Shown: in pieces, positions 7,850-64,000 of the stretch
How positions within the stretch are numbered: the stretch's first letter is position 1
Layout of the letters: each line of letters opens with the position of its first letter
From: Paragordius varius
Taxonomy: Eukaryota; Animalia; Nematomorpha
Assembly: GCA_964247055.1 (NCBI GenBank)
Contig: OZ176056.1
Location: forward strand, 806,001 to 870,000
Length of the DNA: 64,000 nt
Direction: 5' to 3'
Made by a program: the position numbers and the translations under genes
The notes under the pieces: generated by a model
Told to the model about the DNA's origin: nothing
What the model saw: the letters and a program-made list of their open reading frames with translations, nothing else
The model's database searches: none

Positions 7850-8640
7850 TTTGGTGAAAGCTAAATGCAAAAGGTTATCATTCCAGGTGTAATTAATAAT
7901 AAATTTATTTCTTTCGACACTGGTGCTCAAGTCGGTTTGATAAACAAAGCCATGTTAGATTATTTAGCACTTTAAACTATGTACTCTTAGATATTAGATT
8001 ATAGTAATAACGAAATTGATATCTTGGGAGTTAGGCAACTCGCAATAACTGTCAAATATGTAACCAAAACCTTGGAAGCATGGATAACAGCCGACACTAA
8101 TGCCTGTTCTTTGTTTGGTTTACCGTGAATTGTTTCTTTTACTATGGTACTTCCAGAACAGGTGCGAATCAACAAAGTCGTTAAACAACCATCAGTTGAC
8201 CTGAAGATATTCGATCAATACCCTTCCTTGTTTTATTCCCTTTAAACCGATTAATGTCCAACCGGTAAAGCTGGAAATGGATCTTTTGGCGTCACCGAAA
8301 CGATTCCCAGATGAGTACCCATTCCACTCTTGGGATACTGTGGCAAAGGTGTTCGAGCCTTTATCACTGAGTCATCCGCAAAATCAACCTTTCGACTGAA
8401 TACACCGCTTGGTCTACATTAGTGGTTTATGTGCAGAAAAGGACGGATAAGTCCGTGTTTATTCTATACTATACCATCAATAGATATGATGATTAAGATC
8501 GGTGGAGGTCAGTTCTCAGTGGCAAATCTTCAAGAAGATTATCTCCAATTACCTGTCGACGAAAACATCGGCCGTTTGCTAACGATTGCTGCGCACATTG
8601 GAAATCTACACACATTATCTTTTGATTTATTGACAGCACT
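7850..8640 (+). pseudogene. Degraded Ty3/Gypsy pol fragment (aspartic protease and start of reverse transcriptase)
   Basis: FDTGAQV protease motif at ~7915; KDG*VRV at ~8437; YTIPSIDMMIKIGGGQFSVANLQEDYLQLPVDE resembles Gypsy RT YPIP.ID......G...FS..DL..AY.Q..LDE. Stops and frameshifts throughout; no LTRs seen. Confidence 0.85.
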
Positions 8641-10297
8641 GGCAATTTTTCTAAATCTTGAAAAATATACCGATAACAGCAGTAACTTCGATTCAAATTT
8701 GGGGTATCTATTGATTTCAGATATTTTAAGTTTATACTAAAAAACTTAAGGCGGTTACAATTTATATATACTTCTCTATATAAATAAGCCAAAATATTTA
8801 ATATGATTTAGTTTTGAAAAATAAGTTCCGTATCAAACTAGTTGCCATTTTTATTTTACAACATTTTTGCCGTCCTTATTAGATTTTAAGTTAAAAATAA
8901 TTTTTTATTCAACACATGTAACATTGATAGAAATAGAAAAAGTGGTTTATTTTATTTTTAAAGCACACTTGACTAATTTTTTGGGTTTTATACCTTAAAC
9001 AATGTATTGTGAAGAATTTGTAAATGATTTATTTTTATATTTTGGTTTATTAATATTTATAAGTGCAAACTCTTGTCATGATTTCAATTAATTCCATATT
9101 TTTTGTTGTATTCAATTTTAAACAGGCCTGGGGTTTCCAAAGACCCCAAAAATCTAAGAATTGAAATGAATGTGTTCAAATGTAAGCAATAAGAAACAGA
9201 GTAAATTGCCAATACAGTGAACATATTTTTACAATTAGAATTGAATAATATATAAGAGAAACATTATATTTTAAAAACGTATGGTGTATCTGTAAAATTT
9301 TAATTTTTTGCGCTAAGTATGTAGAAAATGCATTTTCGTTAATTTTTTAGTCCCTTATATGCTTGGAAACATACCCAAATCCTGCCAAATAATAAAACAT
9401 TCGATATTTTGAATTCCATTTTTAGTAATTAACTATTCAGGATTAAGAAAATATTTTGAATTACAATATAAAGAATTTACTTTTTAACCTATTTATTTTA
9501 GATTACTATCTATAGATGTTATGCTTAATCGTTTTTGGCATCTAGAATTCTATAGTTTATAAGTGCCCTTGGTTAACTGATTTAAAACAGCGCCCGAAAT
9601 GAAGCTAATAGCTCCAATTACCAATTTTTGTAATACATTAAAATTTTTGGCCCTTTAATCGATAAAGAAATCTAATAGGATTAAAAATATTCACATCTCT
9701 AAGAGGGGTTTTTAGTGAACAAATGACCTAAGATAAAGTTAAAAATTGAGAAGCGGTATAAATGTTCCTAAATATTGGAATGAAGGCATATTTATTTATA
9801 CATTTAACTATTCTTGTTAGAGGATATATATGACAGCGTCTAAATCAATCCGTTAGATTGATTAATATATATTTATATATATATATATATATATATTATT
9901 AAAATTCATTAAATTTAAAATATTTGCATGATAAAACTATTAAATTAAAATTAAATTTTGATGGAGATAAAATACAGTAAAAATTAAAATTATACAGAAC
10001 AGTAGTATAAACACAAATATTTTTTTTAAGACAACCAACTTTTTTTATAATTACATAAATTTAAAATTGTAAAATTGCAATTGATTTCAATAAATATTTA
10101 TCTTTAACATATTTAGCAATTTAAAATAACAAGTTGTTAAATAAGAACGGCGGCCTTTTGGAAAAAAAACCATTTGTATTTATATTTTTACATTTTGGTC
10201 TGTATAATAATAATGTTTACTGTATGTAACAAAGTCACATTGATAATTTTTATGGGGCATTTTTTTAAACAAAATTATTTAAAAAAAACAAAAATTA

Positions 10298-10531
10298 TTA
10301 GATAATTAATAGCTCTCCCCCATCCCCGTGATGATGGTGTCTATGACGATGGTGATGGTGATGATGTTCACGTCTTTTCTCACGAATTAACTTTAAGGCA
10401 GATGAGCTTAGATCTACAGATTCAGGATATTCCAGGTACTTATCTAAGCTTTCTACATTTTGAGCTGACACTCCATTGTTCCTGGCCGGGGCTAATATGG
10501 CGAAGAGCAAGACACTTGCAAGAGAAACCAG
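10298..10531 (-). CDS. His-rich secreted prepropeptide, paralog B (main coding exon; first coding exon not resolved)
   Basis: Acceptor tttttag, then LVSLASVLLFAILAPARNNGVSAQNVESLDKYLEYPESVDLSSSALKLIREKR-REHHHHHHRHRHHHHGDGGELLII*. Close paralog of the exon at 12053-12301. Confidence 0.8.
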   Translation of the reverse strand: MVSLASVLLFAILAPARNNGVSAQNVESLDKYLEYPESVDLSSSALKLIREKRREHHHHHHRHRHHHHGDGGELLII

Positions 10532-11293
10532 CTAAAAATATGCATGGCAAAGTTAAAAATGTTTATAAAAATTTTGTAAAACAGTACCGGATCTTTTATG
10601 CTATAGAGATATAATAAAAAAGTGGATGTATTTACATGATCGTTACGAAGTATGATTTTTCCTTTTTATTAGTTGCATTTTTGAAAATTTTGAAAAATTC
10701 AGTGTCTAATTTGACCAATAAAATAAAACTCATACATAGCGACTGACACATGTGAATTGACTACCTTTTAGCCATTAGAAATACAGATAAGGCCTATAAA
10801 TAGTGCTTGGGTTTATCTTATACTTTCCAAGTTTTATAATTTGAGCATATTCCTACAAGTTCCTAGAATCTATACAGGCTCTGAATATAATGTAGGCATC
10901 TCAATTGGGTCTGATAAGCTTATATCCACTATAATATTCAATATTATAATCTCTTGAAAAGCTAATCTTTAAAAAATAAAATATGCTTATCTATCGTCAA
11001 ATGATATGACTTATCATTTATAAATAAATTTATACCTTTAGGCAAAACCATTTTTTATTTCATTTGGGTAAAAAATAAGTTGATTTTTATACTAATTCAA
11101 AAATGTATAGAAACCCAAAAGGAATATATTTATCTATAAGAATTGGCATACCAAGAGAGTTTTCATAGATTTACCCAACATTGTTATTTCTATGAATATT
11201 ACGGAATATAATTGATTGAAGATGATGTAAAAAAACAAATTTATGCCGTTTTTAAATTTGATCAAACTTTTTATTATATTTTAATTTAAGCGA

Positions 11294-11311
11294 GTCATTT
11301 GCTAAGTCATT
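11294..11311 (-). promoter_or_regulatory. Candidate ARE/CNC-sMaf site upstream of peptide gene B
   Basis: gtcatttgctaagtcatt reads ATGACTTAGCA on the - strand and fits RTGACnnnGCA. An identical 18-mer lies upstream of paralog A. Confidence 0.45.
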
Positions 11312-12052
11312 CTCATCATAATTGATCATCTTAAATAATTATTAACGTTTAAATAAGCGTTATTTTCCAATGTCAGGGTGGCCGTTAACCTACGGCTAAT
11401 TAACTTATATTCGTATACGGGATTATATATAATATATATTAGAATAATAAAGTAAATATTGTTTATAAGATTATAAGTATCCATTTTTTTAATATAATTT
11501 TAAACGACAATAGTTACAGAAAGTTTTACTATATTTGATATTTTTATTTTGAATGCATATTTATATAGATTGAGGGATCCATTTAAATTTAGTTGCCTAG
11601 TAGTATGGTTTTAATTGCATATTTTTGTTAACGTTTTTGCTTTGATGCCAGTATTTTACCTATTGATAAAAAGTTAATTTTTAATAAATGTCTCAAATTT
11701 ACAAATAAACTATTTACGCTGGGAAAAATCTTTAAATCATTCCTAACCTGTTTCAGTACAAAAATTGTCGCTCTATAACACCCAACAAAACACCGTTTAG
11801 TTTAACATTGGAAAAAACACTAAAAATCTTTGAAATATACGATATAGGAATGAAGGCAATTTATTTTATCCCATATATATATTAAGTGATATATAATTTA
11901 AAGAGCATATGGATCAATATAAGTTTTTATCAATATTTTTAAAATTTAGATGAATCCTTAAATTAAAATGAGATTAGTTTAAATGATTTTGGAAATGTGT
12001 GTAAGTTTCTTGCAATTTAGCGGTATTAAATCATTTATATTGTTGAAAAGAT

Positions 12053-12499
12053 TTATAAAATTAAAAGTTCATCTCCTCCCCCATGATGATGATGGCGATG
12101 ATGATGCCTATTGTGGTGATGATGGTGATGATGATAACGTCTTTTCTCTCGAATTAAATTAGCTGCAGAGCCTCTTTGATCCAGAGATTCAGGATACTCC
12201 AAGGAATTATCTAAGTTTGCCACGTTTTGAGCTGACACTCCATTGTTCCCGGGACCCGGGGCTAGAATGGCAAAAAGTAAGGCACTTGCAAGTGAAACCA
12301 ACTATTTAGAAACACACATATATATATACAGTAAAAGCATAAAATGAATGGTGAAAACTAAAAATGTTTATATAAAAATTGCGATAGGAAACGCAGACGT
12401 GGTGTATGAGTATTTTTACAATGCGATTAATTATCGTCAGATAATATATGCAGTAAAGGGCAATACAATTAGCCTATAGTTATTTTTTTCGCTTTTCAT
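12053..12499 (-). CDS. His-rich secreted prepropeptide, paralog A
   Basis: Exon 12499-12467 (MKSEKNNYRLI, donor gtattg), phase-0 intron, exon 12301-12053 (LVSLASALLFAILAPGPGNNGVSAQ...LEYPES...IREKR-RYHHHHHHHNRHHHRHHHHGGGDELLIL*). Confidence 0.85.
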
Positions 12500-13276
12500 T
12501 GCTATTAGACAAGAGTATTTTTTATGCATATGCTATCTGACAGTATTTACGAAAAAGCTAAAAATTTATTTTATCTTATACTTTACATATGGTTAAAAAT
12601 AAAAAGAAAAATGTTTATAACAAAAGGTTATTTAATGTAATCAAAGGCGCGCAGATTAGGAAATATATTTTTGAAATTGTTTATTCTTAGTTTCTAACCA
12701 ATAAAAAACTTTGCTCAAAGCTGTCATACCGAATAGTAAATTAAAAATGAAATATTTTATATTTTAAGATTATTTATATCGAATAGTGTTACGATTGAGA
12801 AATTATTAGCCTTGGGCAGCAAAAGCCAAAATAATATTTTTCAATCAGCATTATTAGTTAAAAAAATTAAGATTTAAAATTATAGTTGCATAAAATCGAA
12901 GTTTTATAAAAAAATATAAAATATAAATTTAAATTTTAAAATTAACCATATTCATAAATTCTTAATATTATCCTGATAGCTCATAATGACCAAGTCGGAT
13001 AAATATGAACCAGATTTAAAATGTCTGTATTTACAGTCTATATAAAAAAATTAATTAAAGGTAAAAAAAAATTTATCCTAACAAATAGAGAGTAGAGTAT
13101 TAAAATAGATTGTAATGTTACAAATTTGGTATACCAAGATATTTCTGACAGATTTACCCAACATTTTCGGTGTGCGGAATATAATTAGAAATTTGTAAAA
13201 ATAATTGTGAATAAAAACAAATTTTTTAAGGCTTTTATATTCCAATCAGCTTTTATTTCAAAATCAATTTGTCTTT

Positions 13277-13294
13277 GTCATTTGCTAAGTCATT
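13277..13294 (-). promoter_or_regulatory. Candidate ARE/CNC-sMaf site upstream of peptide gene A
   Basis: Same 18-mer gtcatttgctaagtcatt as 11294-11311, conserved while the flanks have diverged. Confidence 0.45.
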
Positions 13295-14110
13295 GTTCAC
13301 AAATTGAATTTTATTTTTAGCCCATAGATTGCAAAAACGCATAAAAAGGGAGAATAGGCCTTTAGGAAACGTGCGTTTTCCCCTATATAGTTTATAATTT
13401 AAATGAACTATATTGTTTTGAAATTCAATCATATAACCTCTGATCAATTTAGTGTTTTGCTATGTTACAGAAAACCTTTTATTAAGGTAGGTCCATAATC
13501 TTTAAAGTTAGCACATTTAAATTTTGTAAAAATCCGGATTGAATTACAAAATTTAATTATCTGATGTCAGCATGATGAGTTTTTTCTTTATTCCATTCAA
13601 ATGTATATTTTTAGAAACAAAATTAGTATTTTTGGATTAAGGCCCAAGGATATTTCCATATTGCGGCTAAAAATAAATTTAATTTTTTTTCATTTTATAT
13701 TACAAATAAATTAAATTGATTAATAAATTAATTTTAGAATTTTTAGGCAAAAAATTTGAAATGGACCTGCTTTTAAAAAATCTATTTTGTCACTAAAATG
13801 GCGAAATTAGAATGGAACATTTGTGAAATAATTCCAAAAATATATTTTTCTAAAAAAATTTCATTCAATCAGGATAAATTTTTTTATTTTAATTTATTCA
13901 CATTTTACCATAAATGATTTGGTCCTCTCTCAAATATTTGTATTGAATTTATAATAACAAAATATCATAAAAAAATTCTTTGTTTGATAAATTATAACTG
14001 GGAAAACACGAAGAAACCACTTTAAATTTCTGAAAACATATAAAAGCGATTTTATATTGAGAAAGTTTCTTACGGGGTCCAGAAATTCCTAAGTTAAGAA
14101 AATTAATATA

Positions 14111-14442
14111 TACCATTTACAATTCAATTTCACCCTTGAACAATTCAAATTCACCCTCGAACAATTCAAATTCACCCTCAAATAAAATATATGTTTTTTA
14201 AGATTAAATATTACCTATATTTTATATATTTTTAAAAAATAAAAATTATGTTTTAAATTAAAATAATACTGAAAAAATAATAAACCATACCATAAACATA
14301 TATTTGATATTAATAATTAGTTATATTAGTTCGAAAAAACATAATTTATTTTTAGGGTGAATTTGAATTGTTCAAAGGTGAATTTGAATTGTTCGAAGGT
14401 GAATTTGAATTGTTCAAGGGTGAATTTGAACTGTAAATGGTA
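14111..14442. mobile_element. MITE family 1 (TA-flanked, TIR taccatttacaattcaaattcacc with ~20-bp internal subrepeats), representative copy
   Basis: Left end taccatttacaattc, right end gaactgtaaatggta, with 3-4 copies of gaacaattcaaattcaccct on each arm. Other copies at ~2985-3165, ~4190-4490, 27448-27747, 29985-30216, ~52445-52712, ~57355-57620 and ~58768-59011. Confidence 0.9.
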
Positions 14443-16517
14443 TATATATCAAAACGGTTTGTAAAATTTAAATTTTAAACAATACAATTTGTTTTCACAT
14501 TTGTCATTTAAATAAATTTGGGTTAAAATTATATATTATTCATAATAACATTTTCAAAGTAAGAGATCTTCTCCTAATTTATTGAGAAATAGTCTAAACT
14601 CTAAATGGAATCGATTACTCAAGCAGAATATCCGTTTTTTATTTTTTGAATTTTTTTAATTTATCAGACCAAATCTAAAAATCCTACATAGCTCTTCATA
14701 AAACTAAGTTTTAATTTTAAATCATTATTAGAAAGAATGATAAAAAAATTACATTCATGTTTTGACCTCTATAAAATTTATCAAATATCCTACTACAGTA
14801 TTCATATATTTATATATGAATCGGTGCTCTTTAAGACATTATGAATTTTCAGAATGGCCTAACTATTTCTCTTATATAGGCAGAGATTATAATTAAACGC
14901 TAAATTTATCATTTGTTTAAGCTCTACCCTGGGTTTAAATATGTCTTCACATAAATATACATAAAGTGCAACATATTATCTAATATATATTTAATAAAGT
15001 AAAAATGCAATTGTCATGGTGCTTTTGGTTCCTTTATTTAAACTTTTCTGCTGATAATTTAGCAACTATCTAGACTTTTTAAGTTTATAAAAACTAAGCC
15101 AAAATCATTTGAGCAAAAAATAAACTCTAACCGGGTTTTTACGGGAAAACTCTTCAGAACCGACCTTATTTGATTTAGAACCGTTTTTATTAAATAATAT
15201 GTCGAATCACACCATTTTATTACTTGAAAAATAACGCTTGATAGAATTTTTTAATATTTTCAACCTGTGTGATCTAATGCAATGTTATTTGCAAGCTATT
15301 ATAAACCATTTTTTTGATTTTGACTAACAAAATTTACAAATCACACAACTATTTATACGATGATTTCTGGGTATTTTGATTGGCTATTTAGAGTAAATAG
15401 CAACCATCAAAAAACCAAAATAGGAAGTTTCATTTACGGGTCTTTATTCGCCTTAAATATATTTTGATTATTAATTTGATTTTATGTAAGATTATTTCAA
15501 TTTTAAGACATCAACAATATGGATTAAATACAGCAAAGAAAATAAAAAACAATTTTCTTCAAAAGACAACCATAATTTTTTACTCATAATTTTTTTTAAA
15601 CGAAATGTCAATTAAATATAATGTTGCCAATTGTATAGCGGTTTCAAAGAAAAATTTCCCTTTTTAAGTTTTGTCTGTACAATTTCAATACTTATTGCTT
15701 TGCTTGACCTTTAAAAAATAGTCATATGAGATGTATGTTCAAACCAAATAACAGATTATTGTTTGATTTAATATGTAATTGAAAATATTTGTTGAATCCT
15801 TGCTTATAAAATGATGTTTAAACCAAATTTATTTAATTTGGAGAAAGGTTTTTGAATCTTATAGATAATGTTTCGCATATGGTCTAGAATTCTTATTTAA
15901 TTTAAATATTAGAAGTATAATAAATAGGGGTTTGTGTGGAGAATACAAGAGATAGAACTTTACAGCGCATTTTTCCATTTTCACTGTCAGCCATGGGCAG
16001 CGAGTGTTTAACTTTCTTATATCCTGATACAATTCTTATCTTTTCAGGAACCAAAGGTGTCCAACACGCGGCCCGCGAAAAATTATAATTTTCCAAAAAA
16101 TGCTCATGAATCTTAGTATAATTAATATTTCAACCTATAGAATTGGCAACGTACCAGAAAATTTGTTATATTGTGCTTGTATTTGACAGTTTTATGTTTC
16201 ATGTCTAATATATTTTATGCATCGCGAGAATCCTTTTGTGTTGAACACCCTTTTAAACTTTATATCTTTTACCCATTTGTCAACTAAAACCTTAATACAA
16301 GACTTTTTAAACAAAGATAATTTTTTGTCTGAGTATTGCCACATTTATTTATTGTTTTTGTTGATGGTTTTTGCATTACTCTATCAAACTAATGAAAATT
16401 ACAATACATATATATTATATAATTAGGGGTATTGACGAGCATGACAGAAAACATATAAAAATGGTTCAATCATAATCAGTGAATGAGTGAATGAATGACT
16501 GCACATCTGAAAGGAAC

Positions 16518-18274
16518 TTATCCATGATGGCGACCTCCATGATGCCGACCGCCATGATGTCGTCTGTGTCTTCTCCTCCTTCGTCTGCGTCCACATCTTC
16601 TTCTCCTTCTTCTGCGACGTCGTCTGCGTCCACCGTGATGGCCCCCACCATATCTGCATAGCAACGATTCAAATTAAATTTCATTTTTACAAAGGGTTTT
16701 TTTCAGCTGACAAAAAAAGATATTCAATATTCTCTATAATATAACCATGAATTAGCTGGTCAGAGCTGATTTGATCATTTGTTTAATATAAATATAACAT
16801 TGAATTTAATATATAATTAAACCCCAACATAAGCATTTAAAGACGCTTATGAATTTATACTTGGATTTAGTATTTAATATTTCAAAAAACCTTTTCTCTC
16901 GTTTTAGAGTTTCTCCAACGGCCCCTGGATATTCTAACAAGGCATCTATTTCATAATCTGCAAGGGAGCGTTTTTGTTGCACTAGTCCCGTTGAATCTTG
17001 ATCACCCAATTTTTGATCAGCTGATAAGCGGGAAAATAGATGGAGACATACGAAACCCAATAACTGCAAAAGTTTAAAAAATTATAGATTTTTAAAAAAA
17101 AAATTCTAGGTTTTTTTTCGATATCTTACTATATTAAATTCAGTGATAAGTGATTATAATTAACCATCTTTTTATATACGCGTGAGATATTTTAATATCT
17201 TTAAATTGATTTTTAAGCGTATATAAAAGGGTTTTACATTGTAATAAATTGCAAAATTTTAAGGGTGGCTACAAGGTTAATTAAATCATATATATTGTTT
17301 TAAAAAAAGTCTAGTCATGATTTGATATCGAATTTTAAACTTGTGTTTATAAGTATAATTTAACGCTCCATGAGCTTTTGCGGTAGTTTTTATCCCAGAG
17401 CGATTTGAAATTTAAATATCTCAAAAGTGTTTAAGGTATTAATCCGAATTTAAAAATATGCTTTCTTTAGCCTTTTAGGCGCATTTTACAAAATTCTTAT
17501 TAAAAAGTTAAATTGTAAAAAAATCATCATCTCAAATTTTTTCACCGCCATTTTTTTTAATTCATTTCAATTGTTAATACAATAGGCAGATAAATGTATA
17601 TTATGGTTAGAAAATGTAAAAATTATTTTTAGTAAGGTTTTAGTTTACATTTAATTAGCAAAAACTTGGTAATATTAAATTTATACGCTGTTTGTTTCAA
17701 TCAAGAGATGTCTTAAATTTAATTTCTAGAAGTCACAAAAGGGTAAAAATATTAGTTTTATTAAGTACAGGACAACTATGTTTGAAAATTAATATTACTA
17801 ATATAATTGTAAAAACAATAGTTTATTTAAGATATTGACCTCTGGAATATAAAACCCCCAACATGTCATCGCGGACAAAAAAGTGAAAAGGTCATTAAGT
17901 GTAAAAGACAAAAATACAAAAACAATCCGCAACTTAAAAAGTTAACTCTCAATTTTGCAATAAATTTAGTATGTTTAAATTTTAACTCTACATGGGGTAT
18001 GATATACAAAACGGGTTTCTCAACCATTGTAAACGGCTCTAAAAGTTTTGACTATTCTGAATAGAAAGAAGCAATTATAAATTTGGTTGTGATTAAAAAT
18101 TGACATACAACCTTTAAGTTGCGACTTTATATAGCTAAATAAACTTCCGAAAGATTGTTTAAAAATATTTATCGGATTCCGATCAACATCATTTAAAACA
18201 TTGCCAAAATAAAATTTATAAAAGCAAAAAATGAATATTACCAGTCCTATCGTCAGCACCGATTTGTATTTCAT
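16518..18274 (-). CDS. Arg/His/Gly-rich secreted prepropeptide, paralog C (113 aa)
   Basis: Exons 18274-18242 (MKYKSVLTIGL, donor gtaata), 17063-16891 (LLGFVCLHLFSRLSADQK...QQKRSLADYEIDALLEYPGAVGETLKREK, donor gttttt) and 16653-16518 (acceptor atgcag; R-YGGGHHGG-R11-CG-R7-HRRHHGGRHHGGRHHG*). Phases match; LEYP and REKR are shared with paralogs A and B. Confidence 0.85.
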
Positions 18275-21200
18275 TTCTGAAAGTTTTTGCCCAGATAACC
18301 GTCGATAATGATATCAAGATCACCAAAAATTTGGAAACAAAAAATTATTTTTAAAAAACTTTCCAAGGGGCGTTAACTATTTATACCAAGGCATGAATTT
18401 ACAAAATTTTATACCGTTTTGACCTTAGACTTAACTTTTAAAACATATTTTATTATTTATGGACTAAATTATTATTTATGGAGCTATTTTTAACCCTTTT
18501 TAAAAACTCCATAAGTGTCAATATTTTGACACTCTCATTGTGTGACTACTTAAATTATAAAATGCTTATCTTGCTTAAATTTTTATATTAATTTTGTCCA
18601 ATCATAATATCGGAATAATATATTTTAAAAATAGGTTTTCAAATATGTTTGTTTTAGGGAAAACGCCTCTAAATATGTCTTTTGTTTGTTTAATAATTAA
18701 AATTCTTATAAAAAAAGGAATTAGGCAGTTTTTTTTTATAAAATCTGCATAAATTAAAAAATTCATTTATCATGATGTGTGCACAATGATTGCGGTTTTT
18801 ACATCAACTCGAGAAAAAACCCCTAAAGTTTAAATTTTTTATATTTATATGATGAAAATTGAAGAGCAATAGCTTATGATTGTCAATTTTTTTGTCAAAG
18901 ACAAAAAAATACCTCAAAATATTAATTTTGATGTACCTTCATCTTTTAAAATCATAAAAGATATAAAAATGATTTTTATAAGATGTAGCGAAACCCTATT
19001 CGATTGCAGTAAAAATTGAAATTTTCGGGACAAAACGTAAAAATAGAAAAGCAAACATTGTTTCTAGAAGGCAAACATACTCTTTAAATCTCGTTTTGAC
19101 ACTGTGAAAAAATGTTTTAATTTTATTTCTTCATAAGATAGCTTCTAACCAGCTAATACGTTTGCCGCAAAAATTTTAATTTGTTAATGATCTATTTTTG
19201 GAATATTTAGCCAAAATCAATTGGGCAAAAAGTGAAAATTAAATATTATGATAATTTATTAAAATAATGATAAACCTTGCGATATTTTATCAGTTATTTA
19301 CATTTAAAAATAGCGTAAATCATATAATCAGGGTTTTTATTAATCAGATCAAAAATCATGTTTTTCCTTATAATACTTACGCACAAGATTTGTATATGAA
19401 AATATAGTAAAATAAATATTTTTATTTACTAGCTAAACTCACTATTAAAATCTTAACATTCATATTTTATACAGTAAAAATAACTTAAAAATAATAAAAT
19501 ATTGATTTTATTTTATTTTATTTTTTGTCATCTGGTTTATGAGTGCGTAATAATTTGGTGTTGGGTTTTGGAATTTTAAAGCTCGAAATACATAGTCTAT
19601 AAGTTAATACAAAATCGGATTTTCAAGTAATGGAATATCAGCCAAAAATCCGTACCAAACCCAAGTAACAGGTTAGACAATTAATATTTTCACTGGATTT
19701 GTATGGATTTTTGGTTAATATTGCACTTGTAGATCCCTAGTTTGTAATTTATATTAAAATTCCCGCTCATGTAAAATTCCAAAAAACAAAAAAGTTATTA
19801 TCTCTTATATATCAGATGACAAAATAATGAAAAATATTTTATTATTTTTATTTTAAATAAGTTTATTTTACTGTATTAAATATGATTGTGTGAGTATAGC
19901 TAGTTAATAACTAAGAAAAATATTTTACTAAAAACAATTTGTGTATTGAGTATTTTAAACCGATTATTTGATCTATGTTTTAATATAAACGACTATCTGG
20001 CTATTTAAGTATCATTATCACATAAAATGATAATTTAATATATGAAGTTTTATAATTCGCTTTATCATCCTTAATTTTTGCCGATTTTCTCTCAATATTT
20101 CAAAAACTAATTAATCATAAAAAAATTTTGTTAAAATAATTGACATATTTTTTGCACACTTGCAGAGTATAAAATTGATATGTAATTAGTAACACAATCA
20201 ATTATGTGTTTTACGATTGACATAAAATAATTATAGGATAAATTAAGTTTTTAATAAACTATGGTAGTTCTTTGAAAAAAAATTGTCTCTAGATATGTAT
20301 TGACGTTTAGTCCTTAATGTATCCCCCCAATATAAATCTCTATACTTTTAAAACCTTAATCAGAGCTTTGCTTCCTTAACTTAAATGGATTAGTCATATG
20401 GTTATTTTTTTGTGACTACATATAAAAAAGTGTAAATAACGCGAGGGATTTATAAAAAACACAATGATTATCATGTTGCTCCATAAATATATAATGGTTT
20501 TTTTAAATTCTAATCAACCTATGGAACCGAGTTCCGGGTTAGGTTCGAAGTATAAAGATTTATCTAACAGTTTCAGAGCTTAGAGTCATCAAAAAACGTT
20601 TGTTAGATATTTGCATATATAAATATTTTCCAAACCAATCGCATATTTTATAAAAACATTTATTTGTATTTTTTAAATTTCTTACATTAAAAAAACTTAA
20701 ATAGTAGTTGTGAAAAATCATAAAATCTAATAATTATAATTAATTCAAAATTTGATTAAATTGTTTTAACAGAATAATACAAAATTGCTATAATCCTTAT
20801 TGAAAAGCATTGATGTATTTAGCTGTTAATCGGTATGTTTTAGAACTTCAAATTTAGTTAAGTTTAACAATTTACTAGATAGCGTACTGTGTTTATGTAT
20901 TTAATATTGGACATTCATAAATTTTCCTTAGAAATGGAAGTTTAATTTACAAAAATAATATCTGGAAGACATTGATCTTAGAGTTACAGTATGCATTTTG
21001 ATGATTGCTTATTTTAATCACACTATAGTAGGGCAATTTGCAACACAATATTATATGGAAAAAAGAAAAGAAATAATTGTTTATTCAACATTTTGTTGCT
21101 TTTTCCATACACTAATGTGTTGCCCCACTATAAAGTGAAATAAGCAATTTAAAATGCATACTATAAAAATATTTTATTTAAGGTTTAACTTTATTGTAAC

Positions 21201-23674: not shown

Positions 23675-33276
<9,602 letters not shown>

Positions 33277-33922: not shown

Positions 33923-36900
33923 TCAATTATTAAATGGGCTTGTTTGAGTATCCGAATAATTCAATTTTTGCATTTCCTTTCAGGTTAAATATTTGATATG
34001 GCATAATTTTATCACAAAAACTCAGATTGATACATTTTAAATTTTTCAAATAAATAAATTTAGGTTCCGTATTTTGCTTTGTTGTGAGTTGATGATGTTT
34101 TTCCCTTTATTTTGTCCATTTCCTAAAATATAGCATAACAATAAAAAAAAATATGAAACATAGACAAATATTTTTTCAAAGGACAGCCACCATTTTTAAA
34201 ATTTATTAAACCATTTATTTTTAAAATTAAAATATATAATTACCAATTTACAATTCTAATCTTTTCTATGTTAAAGAAATCGATTAAAAAATATGATAGA
34301 TAGTCTTTTGTTTATGTTTATATTTTTTGTATCTATAATTTCAAGTTTCCTCCAAATAAATAAACCATATAAATTAAACCTTAATATTTTAAATAAGCTA
34401 CTCGTTTTATGAAAAATAGAATATATATATATATATATCTATTCATATTATATTCGCAATTGTTATCTTGTTAGTTTTAAAAATCAAGGATTCAAAATAA
34501 CCTTCATAAGTATCGTTTTTTAATTGTTTTATAATAAAACGCAAAATTTTCAAATTTAATGTTAAAACTTCTTTCATGCATTTCCCTAGAAAAGATGGGT
34601 TTGGAGTGACCACTACTCCGGCAGCTTGTAAGGCTTCAATCTTAGTTTTCGCATTTCCACCGGAACCTATATGTTTCAAAATTAATTATAAAATTTGATA
34701 AAATATTTTTGAAAAATTATTTTTAAAAGTTTAACATAAAATATTTAGATAAGAAATGGATCATCATTAAACTGTAAAGTTAGCGGTTTAAATCCCAAGA
34801 TAATTTGACTTTTTTATGGATTAACCGTGAACTATAAACGATTATCAAATATAAAGCTAATTATACAATTTCTGAACACAAACAATAAAATCAAATTATT
34901 TTAAAAGCTTTATTAGTTTGTGGCTAACAAGATTTTAAATTTATTATTTTTCTTATTTTAAGTGTAGTTAATTAAAGGATTATCTCATTAAAATCCAAAA
35001 ATTGAAAAGTATTAATATAAAAAAGTGAAATTAACTCATTAATGATTTTTATTTATTGAGATACTCTTATTAATAAGAAGGGCTATTTAGTACATATCAA
35101 TTTTTCCATTAATTTAAAACAAATTATCAATCTTTTTGCTTCACCGCAGACCTTTGTAAAAATGTAAGCTAAATGTTATTTCGAATCTTTATTTTTAAAA
35201 TAGAGCTCTCTACAAGGGGTAGGTTACCTCCTTGTTAGGAAAAAAAACCATTAAAGGTTTAATTTTATGATGATTACCATATAATCAAAAAAAAGGTATT
35301 TTAAATTATTTACATATCCTAACCCCTAAACATCTTACCATACTGACACTAAAACTCCTAAAATAAACTAAACAAATATATATAAAATTATTGTAAAAAA
35401 ACCGTATAAATTTGATAAAAAAAGTTTTCCTTACCAGAAGCACTAACTATTGCACCAGCATGTCCCATCCGCCTCCCAGGGGGAGCAGTTAAACCCGCTA
35501 TGAAAGAAACTACGGGTTTTGGGTTATGACCCTATGTAATATAAATATAATCATCATGATATTTTTATACGGTAAAATTGAAATTATACAGATAATGACA
35601 AAGCATTAAAACACAATTTTCGTTTCAAAAGAACTGTGTTCTAATGGCATTTAAATTTAACTGTCAATTTGCCGGCAATGTTTGTACATTATTACGTTTT
35701 TACATGCAGAGCAAAGAATAAAATCATATCCAACATTTAGTCCGCAAACTCCGCATGGTTGGTTATTTAATTTCATTGTGTAGTTCTCGTCTGATATACG
35801 AATTTTACTTTTATTTTCATTAATTTCGAATTCAAATTCGGTCAGCTGTTGTTGACATTGTATAAACATTTTTTCAAGGTCTGATATCGAGGTAATCACT
35901 CTATTATCTACATATAGAATTTCATATGGCAAATTTAACCGAATATCGCGTGCAACCGCGTCTAATATTGTAATAAACAGCAAAGGGCATAAGGCTAATC
36001 CCTGATGGAGTCCTACTTTAACTTCAAGGGAATGTTTTGGGATTTTATTGGAGAAGAAACATATTACATTAAATTAATTGTTCATTAACGTTATTAATTT
36101 GCAAAAACATTACTGGCAATTTTCTTAACAGTTAAGATTCGAATGCGACTTAAGTATTCATCATTCAACGGTTCTACCAATTAAGCACATTGCTCTTAAT
36201 AACTCAAGCATTGAAGTTAGAAACTATGGGTGGAATGAATAAAAAATAGGAAACCCTTTAAGTGTTTCCTATGCTCACTTTTTCAAAGAAAGGGCTTCCT
36301 TATAATTCATATAAAAAACACATCTGATTAACTCTCGAGTTTCCTTAAACCATGCCTAAAACCGATATAAATATAGCTAAAGAAAAACTAATAGCCCTTC
36401 TACTAAAGTAACCTATTTAATATTTTAGATATCCCATAGTTTTAAATAAATCTATGGTGCCGTATGTTGTAATTCAAAAAAAAGCCTATAAAAATCTTCG
36501 AAATTTGTTGACAGAAACAAAGAATTATTATGAGATAGATTAGATAAAAAGCGATAGATATGAAAACTTCAATCAAAAAAATATGATTTAAATATTACAG
36601 GAAACGTTGTCATAAAAGATCGCACGAACTCGAAGGAAATTTTCCTAAATTCTTTATCACAAAAAATCGCACAGAATCGGAAGAATTTTAAATTATTATG
36701 ACAATCTAATCCACATTTTATGATATTAAATAATATATAGATTAAAGTTTATTTAAACATTTTTTTATGATAAAATAATAGTTTTTATACAAATTATCAT
36801 TTGACAAGAATCATATAAGAAACTGATTGACTTTATATTTTTGAAGCTTGCATACAATAAGAAATGAGATTTGTTAAAAAGTTCACCCCAAAAACTAGCT

Positions 36901-42199: not shown

Positions 42200-43110
42200 T
42201 TATGATTAATCGCACCATAAATTATCCTATCTTTTGACCAGTTCCTTGGAGTAGGGTGTATTTGGGTGAGGGGCATAATCTACCTTTGAAAAATTTGAAG
42301 AATATGTTAGAAGACAATTTGATGGTTACGAAAATTATATCCTTTCCCATCTCGACTGTGTTTTACATCTCAGTCAAATAGCCGTTGGCTTTTTGGCCAT
42401 GATCCAAGTATGTGGACCTCGTTGAATCGGCCAGAAAGCAACTGTGAGATGATGATATTTCTCTAATATCGTGTGCCTCATCTAGTGCATTGGGCCCGTT
42501 TTCGCATGTGACCATAAGAAAGATAAGGCACTTGATATCCACAGCCACCACGAGATCAGGTCGAGCCATACGAATTTATTTTATCATATCTAATATTATT
42601 TTTTAATGCATACTGTATAGACGAGTCAAGCGTTTGATTTTCCGATATTACCCGTACGTTGGATGTTTGGTTTTGTTTAATGTGGCGCATTATATTGACA
42701 TGTCGCAAATCAATCAAGCGACTGCTGTTGGCACAGAACCCAAGAATATGGCCTGTAGATTTGTTGGGCTCGTTTTTTCGCCGGAAGTTGCAATCAAAAT
42801 TAGCAACCTTTGGCTTTTAATGGGTAGGAGGTTCAGCCTCGCCTTGTGTATAAACTTCCATTTCCTGCATCTCATGTTCCGATACAGGAAGAAGTGGATG
42901 TGTTGTGCAACACATTACGTTACTTTTCCTTGGAGGCCGTGTGTTCGAGATCACGATCTATGATATTTCTTTTCCACCTGCGGAGGAGAGATACTGCATT
43001 TGGTCGATTGTTTATGTGGATTTTAATGTTGTTAAACTCCATCGAGAGCGTATCAATACGATTAAAAATATTTACTCTGGGTAATATTGTTGAAAAAAAT
43101 ACCAAAACAA
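42200..43110 (-). mobile_element. 3' fragment of a restriction-like-endonuclease non-LTR retrotransposon (NeSL/R5/Utopia-like), decayed
   Basis: In order on the - strand: KWKFIHKARLNLLP (~42860-42822), zinc-knuckle remnant STGHILGFCANSSRLIDLRH (~42755-42700), RPDLVV...MVTCENGPNALDEAH (PD-(D/E)xK nuclease, ~42566-42470). Frameshifted. Confidence 0.8.
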
Positions 43111-53100: not shown

Positions 53101-56100
53101 AAATATACGGACAAAACGGAAAAATACAAATACCCTTTTTTAATCAAAAGACAACCATACCTATTTAAACCTTAATTTATCTTATAAAATTACAATCGAA
53201 ATATAAATAAATGATTATATTACCAATATACATATCTATTTCGTAAAAACAGTTTAAAACAAGGCGTCACATTTAGAAACACATATTTTAAAAACGATGG
53301 TTGTCTTTAAAATAATATTTGTCCTTAAATTTTTACATCTGTATAATTTCAATTTTTACTCTATTATAATTAATATAAATTTTTAGATAAAATTTAATTA
53401 CCAATATCCTCAGTATCTAATCTAGGTCTCTTTGCAGGTGGGCCAGCTTAAAATATAATTAATTTTATTTAATTTAAATAAATATTCAAGATAAAAATTA
53501 AAAAATATTTATTAAACAAGCATTTCTTACCCTCGCTTTCGGCATCTGTAACGAAAATAATTATAAATTTTTCAAATTTTATAATTTATACAAATTTTAA
53601 ATTATATAGATTTTTTTAAATAGAGATTAATGGATATGTAAATTTAGCAATAATTAACCATGAATTTTTCGATTACTACAAGATATCTTTGTTGTATGTA
53701 ATAATAAAACAGTTGTAACTTTTTGCGGGACTAATTATTTAAAATTTTTTTATGTTCAAAAAATTCGCTTACCAAAATTAATAATTACTTTATGTTTTTA
53801 AATTTCCAAAAAATGTAAATATACCATACCCAAATTTGGATTTGACCGCGAAGGGCCTGCATTTTCCAGAGAATTTTGTTCGCCATTGTTTTCTTGAACT
53901 GATTGGAGGTCGCCATTTTCATTATTTTGCATTTCTTGATTATCGCTATTGGATTGTTGAGGTTCAGTTGGATTTTCATCACCATCATTATTAGTGTTTA
54001 GATTTTCTTCAGAATTACTGAGCCCATTGGCACCTCCTTGTACAATGGAACCACTAATTGCTGTTCCCTGAGAGGCTTCAGCTCCAACAATCCCTTAAAT
54101 AGTTTACAGCATGCAAAGATCCTTTTAGATTTTTAGGTTAATTTTATAAAACTGGGATATGTAATTAATATTTAATTATAGAGTAATTTTCAGTAAAAAA
54201 TTAGAATACTAGTTTAAAATCTAAGCGATTGGGTTACTTATGTTTTGAACTCTTTAGATAAAAAAACATTATCCAAAATGAGTTATCCAGTATAATTTTG
54301 AAAGGTAAAGAATAATAAAATAGAATTATATTTTACGGTTAAAATTTTATGCCTACAAATAAATTAAAAATCGAATTTGGTTTTTCAAAAGATTTTTAAT
54401 TGTAACTATTGTATTAAACTATTAAGCATGAAATAGAGATGTAAATTGATCAATGTAAAATAAAATTTTATAGAAAAAGTGTGTTTGCCTTTTGAAAAAA
54501 ATTTGTCTGTCCGTATAATTTCAATTTTTATAATATATTTTTTTAATTTTTAAACCAATTAGGGTATTTATTTATAAAAATAGGTTTAAATTTTTAAAGC
54601 TTGACAGAATCCATATTAATTTTGCAGGGTTAACTGTCAGAAAGATTGTTGAAATTATACGGACAAAGCAAAAAACATATAATAACAACTTTTTTTGAAA
54701 AAGTATTTTTTTAAACTCGTTTTAATTTTTACAGCCTTTATATTTCAAAAATATATACTTACCGCCAAATACACCTGTAAATTGATGAAAAATTGTTATA
54801 ACATTGTATGTGAAAAAAAAATTAATTTAGAATTCATAAAATTTTCATACCTGTAGATGCTATATATAAAAACATAGGAATGATTTAAATTCTTTCTATG
54901 AACAAAGATTTGATTGTAACTATTATTTTTAAAATAAAACATTTAATAACTACATAATTTTATCTAAAATAAAAAAAAATTATTACAGTAAAAATCGAAA
55001 TCATACGGACAAAACGTAAAAATGTAATGACAAATATTTTGTTTAAAAGACCACTCTATTTTTGTAACTTTTAGTCTTTTATATAAATTATTTAATCACA
55101 ATATAATACTAATTCATTATTATCTATAATTACTACTTTGCAGTTTGATATAATGGGTTATACTCCAAAAATCAAATTTATAAAGGTGCAGAGCGGTTTT
55201 TTTGAAAACAAATATGGGTCTCTTTATTTTTACGTTTTGTCCGTATAATGATACTACTGTATGTTTTAAAATTTATTTATTTTATATTGCATACCTCCAA
55301 GGATAGCAGCGGATGTTCCAATTATCGTTGATATACCATTGTTTAGATTGGTAGATGTTTTATTTAAGTTTTTATGTGTCGCCTTATTACCTATGGCTTT
55401 GGGTCGATTAAATTCAAATCTCACATGGTTTTTATTATTAACGGGCGGTTTTTTCGTTCTTTGAGAAATTTGAGAAGACGAAACATTATTATGTCCCGAG
55501 GTATTTAAATTATTTCTATTATTTTTATTTTCTTCATTGTAAGTATTTAGAGTGGTGGTATTAAAATTTGCGGATAATTCAGCAAGGAATCGATTCAAAG
55601 AAAGCACCACTATGATAAAAAAAAAATCTAACTAATAGGATAGGTTTTAATACTATAAATATGGGTATTTTATAGTGATAGAAATATTGACCAATTTAAT
55701 GTATTTTAGTTTTACTTTACGAATTAAATTACATTTTCTAAATAACGCGTGTCCCCCTCCCTTTTCCTCCTCAGAAAATAGAGATTGAACTCTATTCACA
55801 TAATAAAATATTTTTAGGCCAAAATAATTTAATTTAGTATAATAACATTGATTCTTAAATAAATAAAAATAGCGGATAGCTAGTTTTATCAATACAACTT
55901 AAATGGGTATTTTAATCATAGTATCTCAAATGAAAAAGCAACTTTTTTATCTATTAAATATTCAACACAATGTTCCGCCTCATAAATTGATTTTCCAGTA
56001 ATAAGAAGCCAATATAGGATCAATCTTGTGCATATTATTATTATAACCTTTAATTCAATGTTTAATTCAACAAAATCAATACGAAGTTTTACCTTTTACC

Positions 56101-61331: not shown

Positions 61332-64000
61332 ATGTTTATTCCAATGATATGGCTCCTTACGACAGTATTTGATAATATTAAATAATATTTTTTATATATT
61401 AAGATAATATATACCTTAAAAATTTATATAGATTTTTTTCCGAACTATAATTAATTTATTCCACCGAATTTAATTATAAAAGTTACATTATTAGAGATAT
61501 TTTTGTATTGATTTTTTTAGATATTTTTTGACGGAAATTTCGCTTCTAATTTACACACAGATATTGAGTTTCAAGTAATATGGAATTCACCCACTCAAGT
61601 TTGTTCCGAAAGGTTTGAGAAAAGTTTTATATAATATTAATTAAAACTAAATTTTATATTCGCCACAAAAATTATTTTTAGCATAAATATAGATTTCAAC
61701 AAAGTTTATATCATCGCTTTAGTCGTAAATTTTATAATTGGGTTCAAAATTTTGGGTATTTGAAACCGCATTCCTTTTTAAACAATAAAGACTTTTAAAA
61801 AAGGTTTTTCATAAATCCTAAAACCAAATGATATATAATTGCCATATAATTGCAATGAAATTAAAATCATTGGAGTTTCCGCTCCAAATTTAGGCATTAA
61901 AGCGGGATTCCATTTCTAAACATGTCTTAAAACTTTAAAAGTAGAAATTATACGGACAAAACGTAAAAATATAAAGACAAATATTTTGTTTTAAAAGAAT
62001 CACACTTTTTTGAACCTTAATTTTAAGTTATTAAGTTACAATAAATAAAAATTGTTTTACTAATATACATATCAATTTCATACTTTTCTATTAAAAACAA
62101 CGAATCAATTATAATCAAAATCAAGATTAAAAAGTATGGTTGTCTTTTAAAAAAAATATTTATTTTTATATTTTTAGGTTTTGTTCGTATTCTAATTGCA
62201 ATTTTTACTGTATATTATCAGATATGGGAACGATTTAAACCTTGGCAAATATGGCATCCGAAGTAATGTTAAAGAGTCCTGGAGAGGTCATTTAGTAAAT
62301 TGCTTATACATAACACAATGTGGAATGTGGCCACGTATATTACAAGATAGAAAAAACGATCAAAATAAGCATCAACTAATCAATGGAGGAATCCCACAGT
62401 TAGGAGACTTATCTGCGCATTTACAAACGCTTGAAAAGCATTTAAATCAACACATGCCAGACGCAAATTTTTCGGTATTTCAATCCCTTTTTACTTTGAA
62501 AACCCAAACAACTCTTTTTTTATTCAAGAAAAAACTAAATATTTTTTGAAACAGCAGTATGACTAAGTATACATTGCTAGTTTTTTTTGTTAGATATTGC
62601 CAGATAGTATATTCAGCAAAGAGCAAAATAGTATTGGCTTATATTTTTTTCACTGTTGTATAACATTAGTCAAAAATAATTTATTTGCTGTTGATATTTA
62701 ACGAAAAACTAGCTATATAACTCACTTGAACTGTATAAAAGGACAACATTATAAAACATTCTTTTTACCAAAACAAATCTGTCTTTGTGTTTTTATAAAA
62801 AACATTTAGTAATACAACTCATTTTTTGTAAAGAAATAGAAACTATTGCGTGAAATATAGTGTTTTATAAAAGAAATTGCATTATAATGTTGTTTTTGAA
62901 TAAAAAAATGGCAAATCCGTGTATGTAATTAATTTTGAACATAATCACCTTGAATAATAATTATATTTAAAACATTTTATATTGGCTGCCCCAAGTCAGA
63001 TTTTAATGAAAAGGTATTTAAATTAAATTTATTCTAAAGAATGAAATATTCTTTTATATATCCAATATTCTAACATTTATTGTTAGTCAAAAATATTTTA
63101 ATTTTTTAGATATATTGAGATGATTTGGTCATATTATAAAGCGCATATATAAACAATTTATTTGATCCATATATTGACATTTATAGGGATTGGGTGTTTT
63201 AGATATGGAGGAATATGTCCCATGGTTCAATAATTTAAATTTCGGACCCTATATGAAGTATTGGGTAATATATGTAAAATTATAAATTTATTTTTTAAAT
63301 TAATTTGCTCCTTAACTAATTTATACTTGTAATGCATGATTTTTTAAAAAATTAAAATATTCTTTATATATTTATAGAACCTTTCGATTGAAACCATCAA
63401 AAATGAGTATCCAACAATTCAAGATCGTTATATAATTAAACAATATGCCGCGCGTGAATATGAAAAAAGTATAAAAACCTTCCTGACCCAAACTTTAGAT
63501 AGGGCAAAGGCAGCCCGAAAAAATGCTCACTGGGGATATTGGGGTTATCCTTTTTGTGCACGGTAATATTAGATGTTTATTTTAATTTTTGAATTTACGT
63601 GAACTTTTGTTAATGGCTTACGATGAAATCTATATATTTTTATTTATATTACTAAAGATAATGGAATATTTGCATTTTTGGTTTACTGATTCGTAATATT
63701 TTTATGATATTTCAAACTTTGTACAAAACAAAATTATTTAATACCGTTTCTTATTATTATATGATAATTTTTAAATTTTCATGATTAAAATGAAATAATT
63801 ATAATCTTCTAAAACTGTCATTTATTAAAAAGTGTTTCGTAAAATAATTTTTTTAATATTCTCATTATTTGGTAGAACGTTTATGGATCTCCAATGTGAA
63901 AACAAATTACAAAATCTTAACAATGCAATCTATTGGCTTTGGGCCGAATCAGCTGTTTTATATCCTTCCCTGTATTTAAATCGCCGGGCCATACCTGACA
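61332..64000 (+). CDS. Secreted hyaluronidase (glycoside hydrolase family 56), 5' part, continues off the right end
   Basis: Exons 61332-61364 (MFIPMIWLLTT), 61521-61612 (FQVIWNSPTQVC), 62222-62474 (NGGIPQLGDLSAHL), 63187-63264 (GLGVLDMEEY, catalytic D-x-E), 63378-63562 (TFLTQTLDRAK...WGYWGYPFC) and 63876 to end (WLWAESAVLYPSLYL). Confidence 0.93.

Follow-up and report, generated by a model that had tools for sequence, protein, structure and literature searches.

Frog dermaseptins, cone-snail toxins, cathelicidins and the arminins of Hydra are made from precursors in which a conserved prepro-region precedes a variable mature peptide, and histatins are secreted, unstructured, His-rich peptides that bind metals and are more active at low pH. 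The poly-His-poly-Gly peptides of vipers (pHpG) are a natural secreted form of poly-His and have been proposed as metal chelators that hold metalloproteinases inactive (PMC9472272, PMC12108757). Histatins have been named as a His-rich class of host-defence peptides (PMC2853521), polyarginine peptides have been reported to inhibit furin and to cross membranes (PMC4482483, PMC11394684), and the nlp/cnc loci of Caenorhabditis elegans consist of tiny genes in tandem clusters that encode defence peptides of low complexity, rich in glycine (PMC2453101). The locus described here lies in a 64-kb window of Paragordius varius (contig OZ176056.1, positions 806,001 to 870,000; the window is the whole stretch analysed, and positions are counted from its first letter). 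It comprises three small genes, termed A, B and C, all on the minus strand between 10298 and 18274, which in our best reading form a tandem family restricted to its lineage, whose secretory peptides are processed by a convertase and have a His-rich (A, B) or Arg-rich (C) terminal part, the cargo. The layout itself is of an already known kind, in which a conserved prepro module is combined with a basic site and with a product that is cationic; the family is without a relative in the collections searched.

All three gene models show the arrangement that an earlier note on this DNA had proposed, namely minus-strand genes with a signal peptide split by a phase-0 intron, the motif LEYP, the motif R-E-K-R and a low-complexity tail. 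Gene searches, fold prediction and the judgement of signal peptides were made on separate exons. All introns are of the GT..AG type, and intron 1, in phase 0 in all three genes, splits the charged n-region from the hydrophobic core of a signal-peptide-like N-terminus. Exon 1 has 10-11 codons, with Met and two basic residues, and an A stands at position -3 of the ATG in each gene. LEYP is likewise found in each gene, with R-E-K-R 12-17 residues further on and a His/Arg-rich stretch thereafter.

Exon 1 of gene A (11152..11181; 30 nucleotides (nt), the ATG plus nine codons) encodes the predicted n-region with two Lys, ends at donor GTATGC and has 60% protein identity with exon 1 of gene B. It is followed by an intron of 620 nt (10532..11151; phase 0, GT..AG, 26% guanine plus cytosine (GC)) and by exon 2 with the stop codon (10298..10531), which is entered through acceptor TTTTTAG and encodes the hydrophobic core, a putative VSA/Q signal cleavage site, LEYP, REKR and a cargo of 24 residues. 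Gene B has the same layout with a cargo of 28 residues, its exon 1 (13135..13164; 30 nt, the ATG plus nine codons, donor GTATAC) being separated by a phase-0 intron of 833 nt (12302..13134; 23% GC) from exon 2 with the stop codon (12053..12301). In gene C, exon 1 (18242..18274; 33 nt, the ATG plus ten codons, donor GTAATA) and a phase-0 intron of 1178 nt (17064..18241; 24% GC) precede exon 2 (16891..17063), which encodes the core, an LSA/D site, an internal KR, LEYP and R-E-K plus two nt of the last Arg codon; exon 3 with the stop codon (16518..16653; acceptor TATGCAG) carries a cargo of 44 residues. For A and C, the first coding exon had been put at exactly 33 nt, with AG plus 2 nt before it. 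This holds for C, whereas exon 1 of A has 30 nt and is preceded by AG plus 8 nt; exon 1 of B, also 30 nt long, has no AG nearby upstream. The sequence TATAAATA stands at 18378..18385, ~104 nt upstream of the ATG of gene C, so that no upstream acceptor is needed.

Judged by exon, the N-termini of all three predicted precursors look like signal peptides, with a basic n-region (exon 1 charge +2), a hydrophobic core and small residues at -3 and -1. Exon 2 opens with a hydrophobic stretch of 13-15 residues (mean Kyte-Doolittle value 1.1-1.2, c-region included) that leads into V-S-A/Q in A and B or L-S-A/D in C. A putative R-X-K/R-R site separates the pro-piece from the product in each gene, the last Arg of C being completed by the predicted splice. 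The pro-piece had been described as acidic, which is right in sign only to the extent that it is weakly acidic: its net charge, basic site included, is -1 in A and B and -2 in C, and it is not markedly acidic. The A cargo contains 11 His and 3 Arg, a G-D-G-G linker and a hydrophobic E-L-L-I-I end; that of B contains 14 His, a G-G-G-D linker and a hydrophobic E-L-L-I-L end. In both, His makes up about half of the peptide and forms runs of 6-7, and the computed charge is +1 to +2.5 at pH 7.4 and +10 to +14 at pH 5.5. The C cargo consists of a Gly/His head (Y-G-G-G), R11, C-G, R7, three R-H-H-G(-G) units and a terminal Gly, and holds 22 Arg, 9 His and a single Cys with a net charge of ~+23. AlphaFold gave no confident fold for exon 2 of gene B (predicted local distance difference test 62.7, predicted template modelling score 0.26), the only helices being the hydrophobic core and one that spans the cleavage site.

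Gene C is the most divergent member. It shows 38% identity with A/B when gaps are allowed and 15 invariant columns, including LEYP and R-E-K, and this protein similarity by itself is not significant (E-value 4-7). Its membership in the family is suggested by motif co-occurrence, layout, strand, proximity, and an intron position and phase in common with A/B. The tail follows R-E-K-R within exon 2 in A and B; in C, it lies on a separate exon and is joined through a predicted second intron at the cleavage site. Exon 2 of C ends with R-E-K and AG (phase-2 donor AAG/GTTTTT), and exon 3 opens with the A that completes Arg. The His/Arg segment of exon 3 lies 237 nt downstream of exon 2 and is frame-compatible with this donor and with a second in-frame donor 30 nt further on (CAA/GTATAA, between 16861 and 16860), which would insert ten residues between site and cargo. 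We slightly favour the first donor, because the additional 30 nt are intron-like (~17% GC) and because GTTT-type donors occur in Gordionus, where one is present in a CHMP5 intron.

Several properties support A, B and C as real, selected coding genes. In the six-frame translation of the 64-kb window, LEYP and REKR occur exactly three times each, all in A, B and C. The combination of LEYP with R-x-K/R-R within 25 residues was found three times in the window and never in 200 shuffles that preserved local composition, and the only three open segments with at least 9 His plus Arg per 20 residues are the cargos of the three genes. Exons have a GC content of 41-56% (33% in two 30-nt exons), as compared to 23-26% in introns and spacers. 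The exons of A and B share ~85% nucleotide and 72% protein identity; introns and flanks do not align. Over 87 codons, the Nei-Gojobori method gave a synonymous divergence (dS) of 0.66 and a ratio of nonsynonymous to synonymous divergence (dN/dS) of 0.23 for this pair, with splice sites, start and stop retained in both. A and B are thus old paralogues under purifying selection. The dN/dS ratio is 0.25 in the signal region, 0.30 in the pro-piece and 0.11 in the cargo, where dS reaches 1.4, which means that His is kept while its codons CAT and CAC interchange. His is written with both codons and Arg with up to six different codons (six in gene C); the runs are therefore kept up at the level of the protein and do not represent slippage repeats. 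Here a tandem-repeat finder detected no more than 2.6 copies of a 15-nt unit, at the end of gene C.

These rates bear on how the cargos evolve. The cargo had been called hypervariable, which does not agree with the A/B comparison, in which it is conserved and more strongly constrained than any other part of the gene. Diversification by swapping of the mature part had also been suggested and is not borne out, since the locus offers a single contrast, that of A/B with C. The cargos on the two sides of this contrast have a common His/Arg/Gly make-up (tblastn E-value ~1e-4, driven by composition) and could be diverged forms of one low-complexity tail, not swapped modules. Asp-rich frames on the plus strand opposite the His runs were considered and rejected; their extent is unequal in A and B, and start, splice sites and stop are not conserved.

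Searches for relatives agreed with the statement of the earlier note that no named family is recognisable: neither Pfam nor the PDB nor the protein collections searched yielded a relative. No exon translation exceeded a Pfam gathering threshold; the best matches, ZrgA (13.5 bits) and SelP_N (9.7 bits), were rejected as matches to His runs far under the cut-offs. A word-index search of 5.8 billion proteins gave no candidate for the pre-pro part of B and 13 candidates, none significant, for its cleavage site plus cargo. When the three pre-pro regions served as the profile in an exhaustive search of 1.84 billion representatives, two matches came back, a TPR-type repeat protein of 1089 residues and a repeat protein of 557 residues. 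Both were rejected as repeat-summed noise because each was matched 5-7 times over ~15 residues. The PDB sequence search returned engineered His-tags only, scans of metagenomes, one with a back-translated motif and one with 25 nt common to A and B, gave no match, and nothing relevant was found in the literature on secreted His-rich peptides of hairworms or on prepropeptides with polyhistidine. The CHMP5 locus of Gordionus with 10-kb flanks contained no LEYP/REKR and no His/Arg-rich frame; this synteny test says little because the CHMP5-like open reading frame of the window is an intronless copy at a different locus. The term orphan accordingly means that the genes are not in the collections searched, which covered proteins, structures and metagenomes and in which small unannotated eukaryotic genes are poorly represented.

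Compared with the described systems, the likeness is one of plan. The viper pHpG peptides are likewise secreted, excised from a precursor and built of 6-9 consecutive His followed by Gly. Their Gly run, however, is ~10 residues long and they have no hydrophobic tail, whereas A and B combine His runs of 6-7 with G-D-G-G or G-G-G-D and then a hydrophobic tail, so that the poly-His part is present and a long poly-Gly directly after it is not. A large vertebrate precursor that holds several peptides is the source of the pHpG peptides; A and B are each a dedicated gene of ~90 codons with a poly-Arg paralogue present, and the protein searches returned no named match to a viper venom precursor. The nlp/cnc (caenacin) genes are, like the present ones, ecdysozoan tandem tiny genes that encode a signal peptide and a Gly-punctuated peptide and diversify through duplication (PMC2453101), and the Gly/His head and R-H-H-G-G units of C resemble their repeat style. 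They differ in a Gly/Tyr/Trp composition and in the lack of a LEYP pro-piece and of R-E-K-R, and none was matched in the searches. Gly-aromatic repeats right after the signal peptide, as in nlp/cnc, are absent from A and B; in C, one Y-G-G-G head and three R-H-H-G-G units are present but stand behind a pro-piece of 40 residues. With dermaseptins, cone-snail toxins, cathelicidins and arminins, the locus shares the logic of signal and pro-piece, basic site, differing cationic peptide and orphan or lineage-restricted tandem genes. It differs in having three genes only, two of them with the same selected cargo, and a pro-piece that is nearly neutral and not strongly anionic, and the searches returned no similarity to these families. 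The His density of A and B, ~50% with uninterrupted runs of 6-7, is far higher than that of histatins, which were not matched in Pfam or protein searches either. The Arg runs of C (7-11 residues) are like those of known polyarginines. These, however, are nuclear proteins or synthetic, whereas the run in C is encoded by a genomic gene behind a predicted signal peptide and convertase site.

From these parts, the following route can be proposed. The precursor would enter the endoplasmic reticulum, where signal peptidase would cut after the SA that closes the hydrophobic region, and a furin/kexin-type proprotein convertase would cut after R-E-K-R(-R) late in the secretory pathway, R-X-K/R-R being the furin-type motif; a carboxypeptidase would then trim the basic residues. 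The new N-terminal Gln of the A/B pro-piece may cyclise to pyroglutamate, the terminal Gly of C may serve amidation, and Glu-Tyr-Pro within LEYP has the look of a determinant for tyrosine sulfation or sorting that belongs to the delivery module common to the three genes. The A/B products would be poly-His peptides of 24 and 28 residues, natural His-tags with a hydrophobic ELLI(I/L) end, which would bind Zn, Cu or Ni and become active on membranes or polyanions upon acidification. The shift from near neutrality at pH 7.4 to a strongly positive charge at pH 5.5 would make them pH-switchable. The C product would be a poly-Arg peptide that binds polyanions and membranes. Layout and composition are the grounds from which we infer an effector or defence role, and we put the probability that the three products act as extracellular host-defence-type peptides, combining metal-sequestering with cationic members, at about 0.5.

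Several points weigh against this host-defence proposal. The gene models, their splicing and the processed peptides are predictions made from the DNA. The pro-piece, being nearly neutral, cannot mask a C cargo of +23. The Arg runs are themselves multibasic convertase sites, so that the same machinery could chop and trim the C peptide, which is a difficulty for every reading that needs this peptide intact. The part conserved in A, B and C alike is the pro-piece and not the tail, and the active product of a peptide-hormone precursor is usually its conserved part. Since no relatives were found, conservation beyond the locus is uninformative. Finally, gene C could be made differently: exon 2 could be read through to end at 16806 with a hydrophobic-cationic tail of 27 residues, and an Asp/Glu-rich frame of 72 codons with its own ATG (16466..16684, minus strand) is likewise open in the DNA of exon 3. 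Low-complexity DNA rich in purines can be expected to have overlapping open frames, and our preference for the Arg/His frame comes from its compatibility with splicing and from its likeness in composition to the A/B cargo.

The conservation of the pro-piece leads to the alternative that the genes encode hormone- or neuropeptide-like precursors in which the LEYP segment is active and the tails are spacers, pieces for sorting or granule condensation, or material cut to tiny amidated fragments. Small genes of two or three exons with an intron-split signal peptide are common among such precursors, and the LEYP region is the only part conserved across all three genes. The segment is bounded by KR and R-E-K-R in C, the only gene with this pair of sites, and by the signal cleavage site and R-E-K-R in A/B. 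The predicted mature N-terminus is Gln in A/B, C ends in Gly, and the R-H-H-G-G-R units of the C tail resemble cleavage-plus-amidation units. Outside LEYP, however, A/B and C have little of the segment in common (the 38% identity with gaps given above), and between A and B it is less constrained than the tail (dN/dS 0.30 as compared to 0.11). The segment also lacks a C-terminal amidation signal, a terminal Gly being found only in C and there on the tail, and no neuropeptide family was matched in Pfam or the protein searches. We consider this alternative unlikely.

A second alternative, which we regard as distinctly unlikely, sees in the products secreted regulators of enzymes, with poly-His buffering zinc and holding co-secreted metalloproteinases inactive and poly-Arg acting on furin-type convertases as a competitive inhibitor, possibly on those of a host if the animal is a parasite. 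The genome is hairworm-like, and hairworms are parasites of arthropods. The order of a poly-His run and then a Gly-rich stretch in A/B is that of the viper peptides (PMC9472272, PMC12108757), and polyarginines as well as cell-penetrating cationic peptides are reported to inhibit furin (PMC4482483, PMC11394684). Yet the Gly stretch of A/B comprises only 3-4 residues mixed with Asp, as against ~10 in the viper peptides, and no metalloproteinase or convertase gene was seen nearby, the neighbours in the window being housekeeping genes. A more far-reaching version, which we hold to be quite improbable, would combine an undescribed, taxon-restricted delivery module (split signal peptide, LEYP, R-E-K-R) with near-homopolymeric cargos, so that a parasitic hairworm would secrete His-tag-like metal binders together with R11/R7 polyarginine that enters cells or blocks convertases, possibly acting on its host. 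If true, such a system would correspond, in nature, to the His-tags of the laboratory and to cell-penetrating or furin-inhibiting polyarginines.

Structural or packaging roles, for example metal-crosslinking in cuticle, egg envelope or adhesive, or the condensation of polyanions in granules by polycations, appear very doubtful. Metal-crosslinked His-rich proteins are known in invertebrate hard tissues, and the extreme His/Arg content, the missing fold, the lone Cys of C that could dimerise and the hydrophobic C-terminal anchor of A/B would suit such a role. The products are, however, very short (24-44 residues), and a tail preceded immediately by a convertase site is a commoner feature of peptides that are released than of matrix proteins. 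That the three genes are non-functional, being either frames open by chance in DNA of low complexity or pseudogenes in decay, is scarcely credible: such DNA is open in several frames and no homologue was found in the collections searched, but a dN/dS of 0.23 at a dS of 0.66, conservation confined to exons, retained splice sites, start and stop, the sharp GC contrast at exon borders and a motif pairing never seen in shuffles speak against it.

If made as predicted, the secreted peptides of the family would be among the most extreme natural homopolymer-like ones, placed behind an ordinary secretory/convertase module. The locus would then offer a compact natural system for the routing and processing of polycations in the secretory pathway, for the origin and upkeep of low-complexity peptide genes in which selection acts on amino acids as codons turn over, and for the part played by small orphan genes in a phylum about which little is known. 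Genes of this kind escape standard annotation and protein databases, and nothing comparable was present among the 1.84 billion representatives.

The flanks of A and B, which otherwise do not align, share an identical element of 18 nt on the minus strand (11294..11311 for A, 13277..13294 for B), located in both cases exactly 113 nt before the ATG, which adds to the support for A and B as genes. Its core fits R-TGAC-NNN-GC-R, of which the window contains four sites where 0.9 are expected; none lies within 600 nt upstream of gene C. We take this to be the shape of a Maf/CNC-bZIP (stress-response) site and regard it as a lead only. The spacer between genes B and C contains a foldback-like element (14106..14447) with two inverted arms of 80 nt that are 91% complementary, consist of 21-nt tandem units and are separated by 182 nt. 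A GC-rich island (15926..16115) lies in the same spacer and two others elsewhere (8004..8673, 42299..43066); these islands have 39-41% GC against a background of 25%, and they lack both a long conserved frame and a match in Pfam or Rfam. Scans of the window for Rfam families and tRNAs gave no match.

Beyond the peptide genes, the window is an ordinary stretch of metazoan chromosome with 24.7% GC throughout. A dyskerin-like gene with DKCLD, TruB_N, TruB_C_2 and PUA domains occupies ~24.0-31.2 kb on the plus strand, a succinyl-CoA ligase alpha-like gene ~34.4-41.5 kb on the minus strand, and two exons of a GH56 hyaluronidase gene (62196..62546 and 63378..63563, plus strand) continue past the window end. 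A reverse-transcriptase fragment (RVT_1; 35660..36073, minus strand) falls inside the stretch occupied by the succinyl-CoA ligase alpha-like gene and is presumably intronic. On the minus strand at 53801..54149, an open segment of 98 codons, rich in Asn, Glu, Gln and Ser and raised in GC, may be a low-complexity coding exon. The CHMP5-like open reading frame mentioned above (24436..25179, plus strand; Snf7/CHMP5-like, intact, intronless, 247 residues) sits within the dyskerin-like gene, whose strand it shares, in the intron between exons 24032..24361 and 25779..25940. Its closest relative is CHMP5 of Gordionus (56% identity), followed by cnidarian and vertebrate CHMP5 (~50%). The Gordionus gene has ~8 exons over 8.4 kb, and the copy in the window looks like a retrocopy with a retained reading frame. 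The Gordionus CHMP5 locus has ~25% GC, the published Gordionus genome has 26.93% GC, 63.8% repeats and 10,320 genes, and the low gene density and composition of the window agree with these figures.

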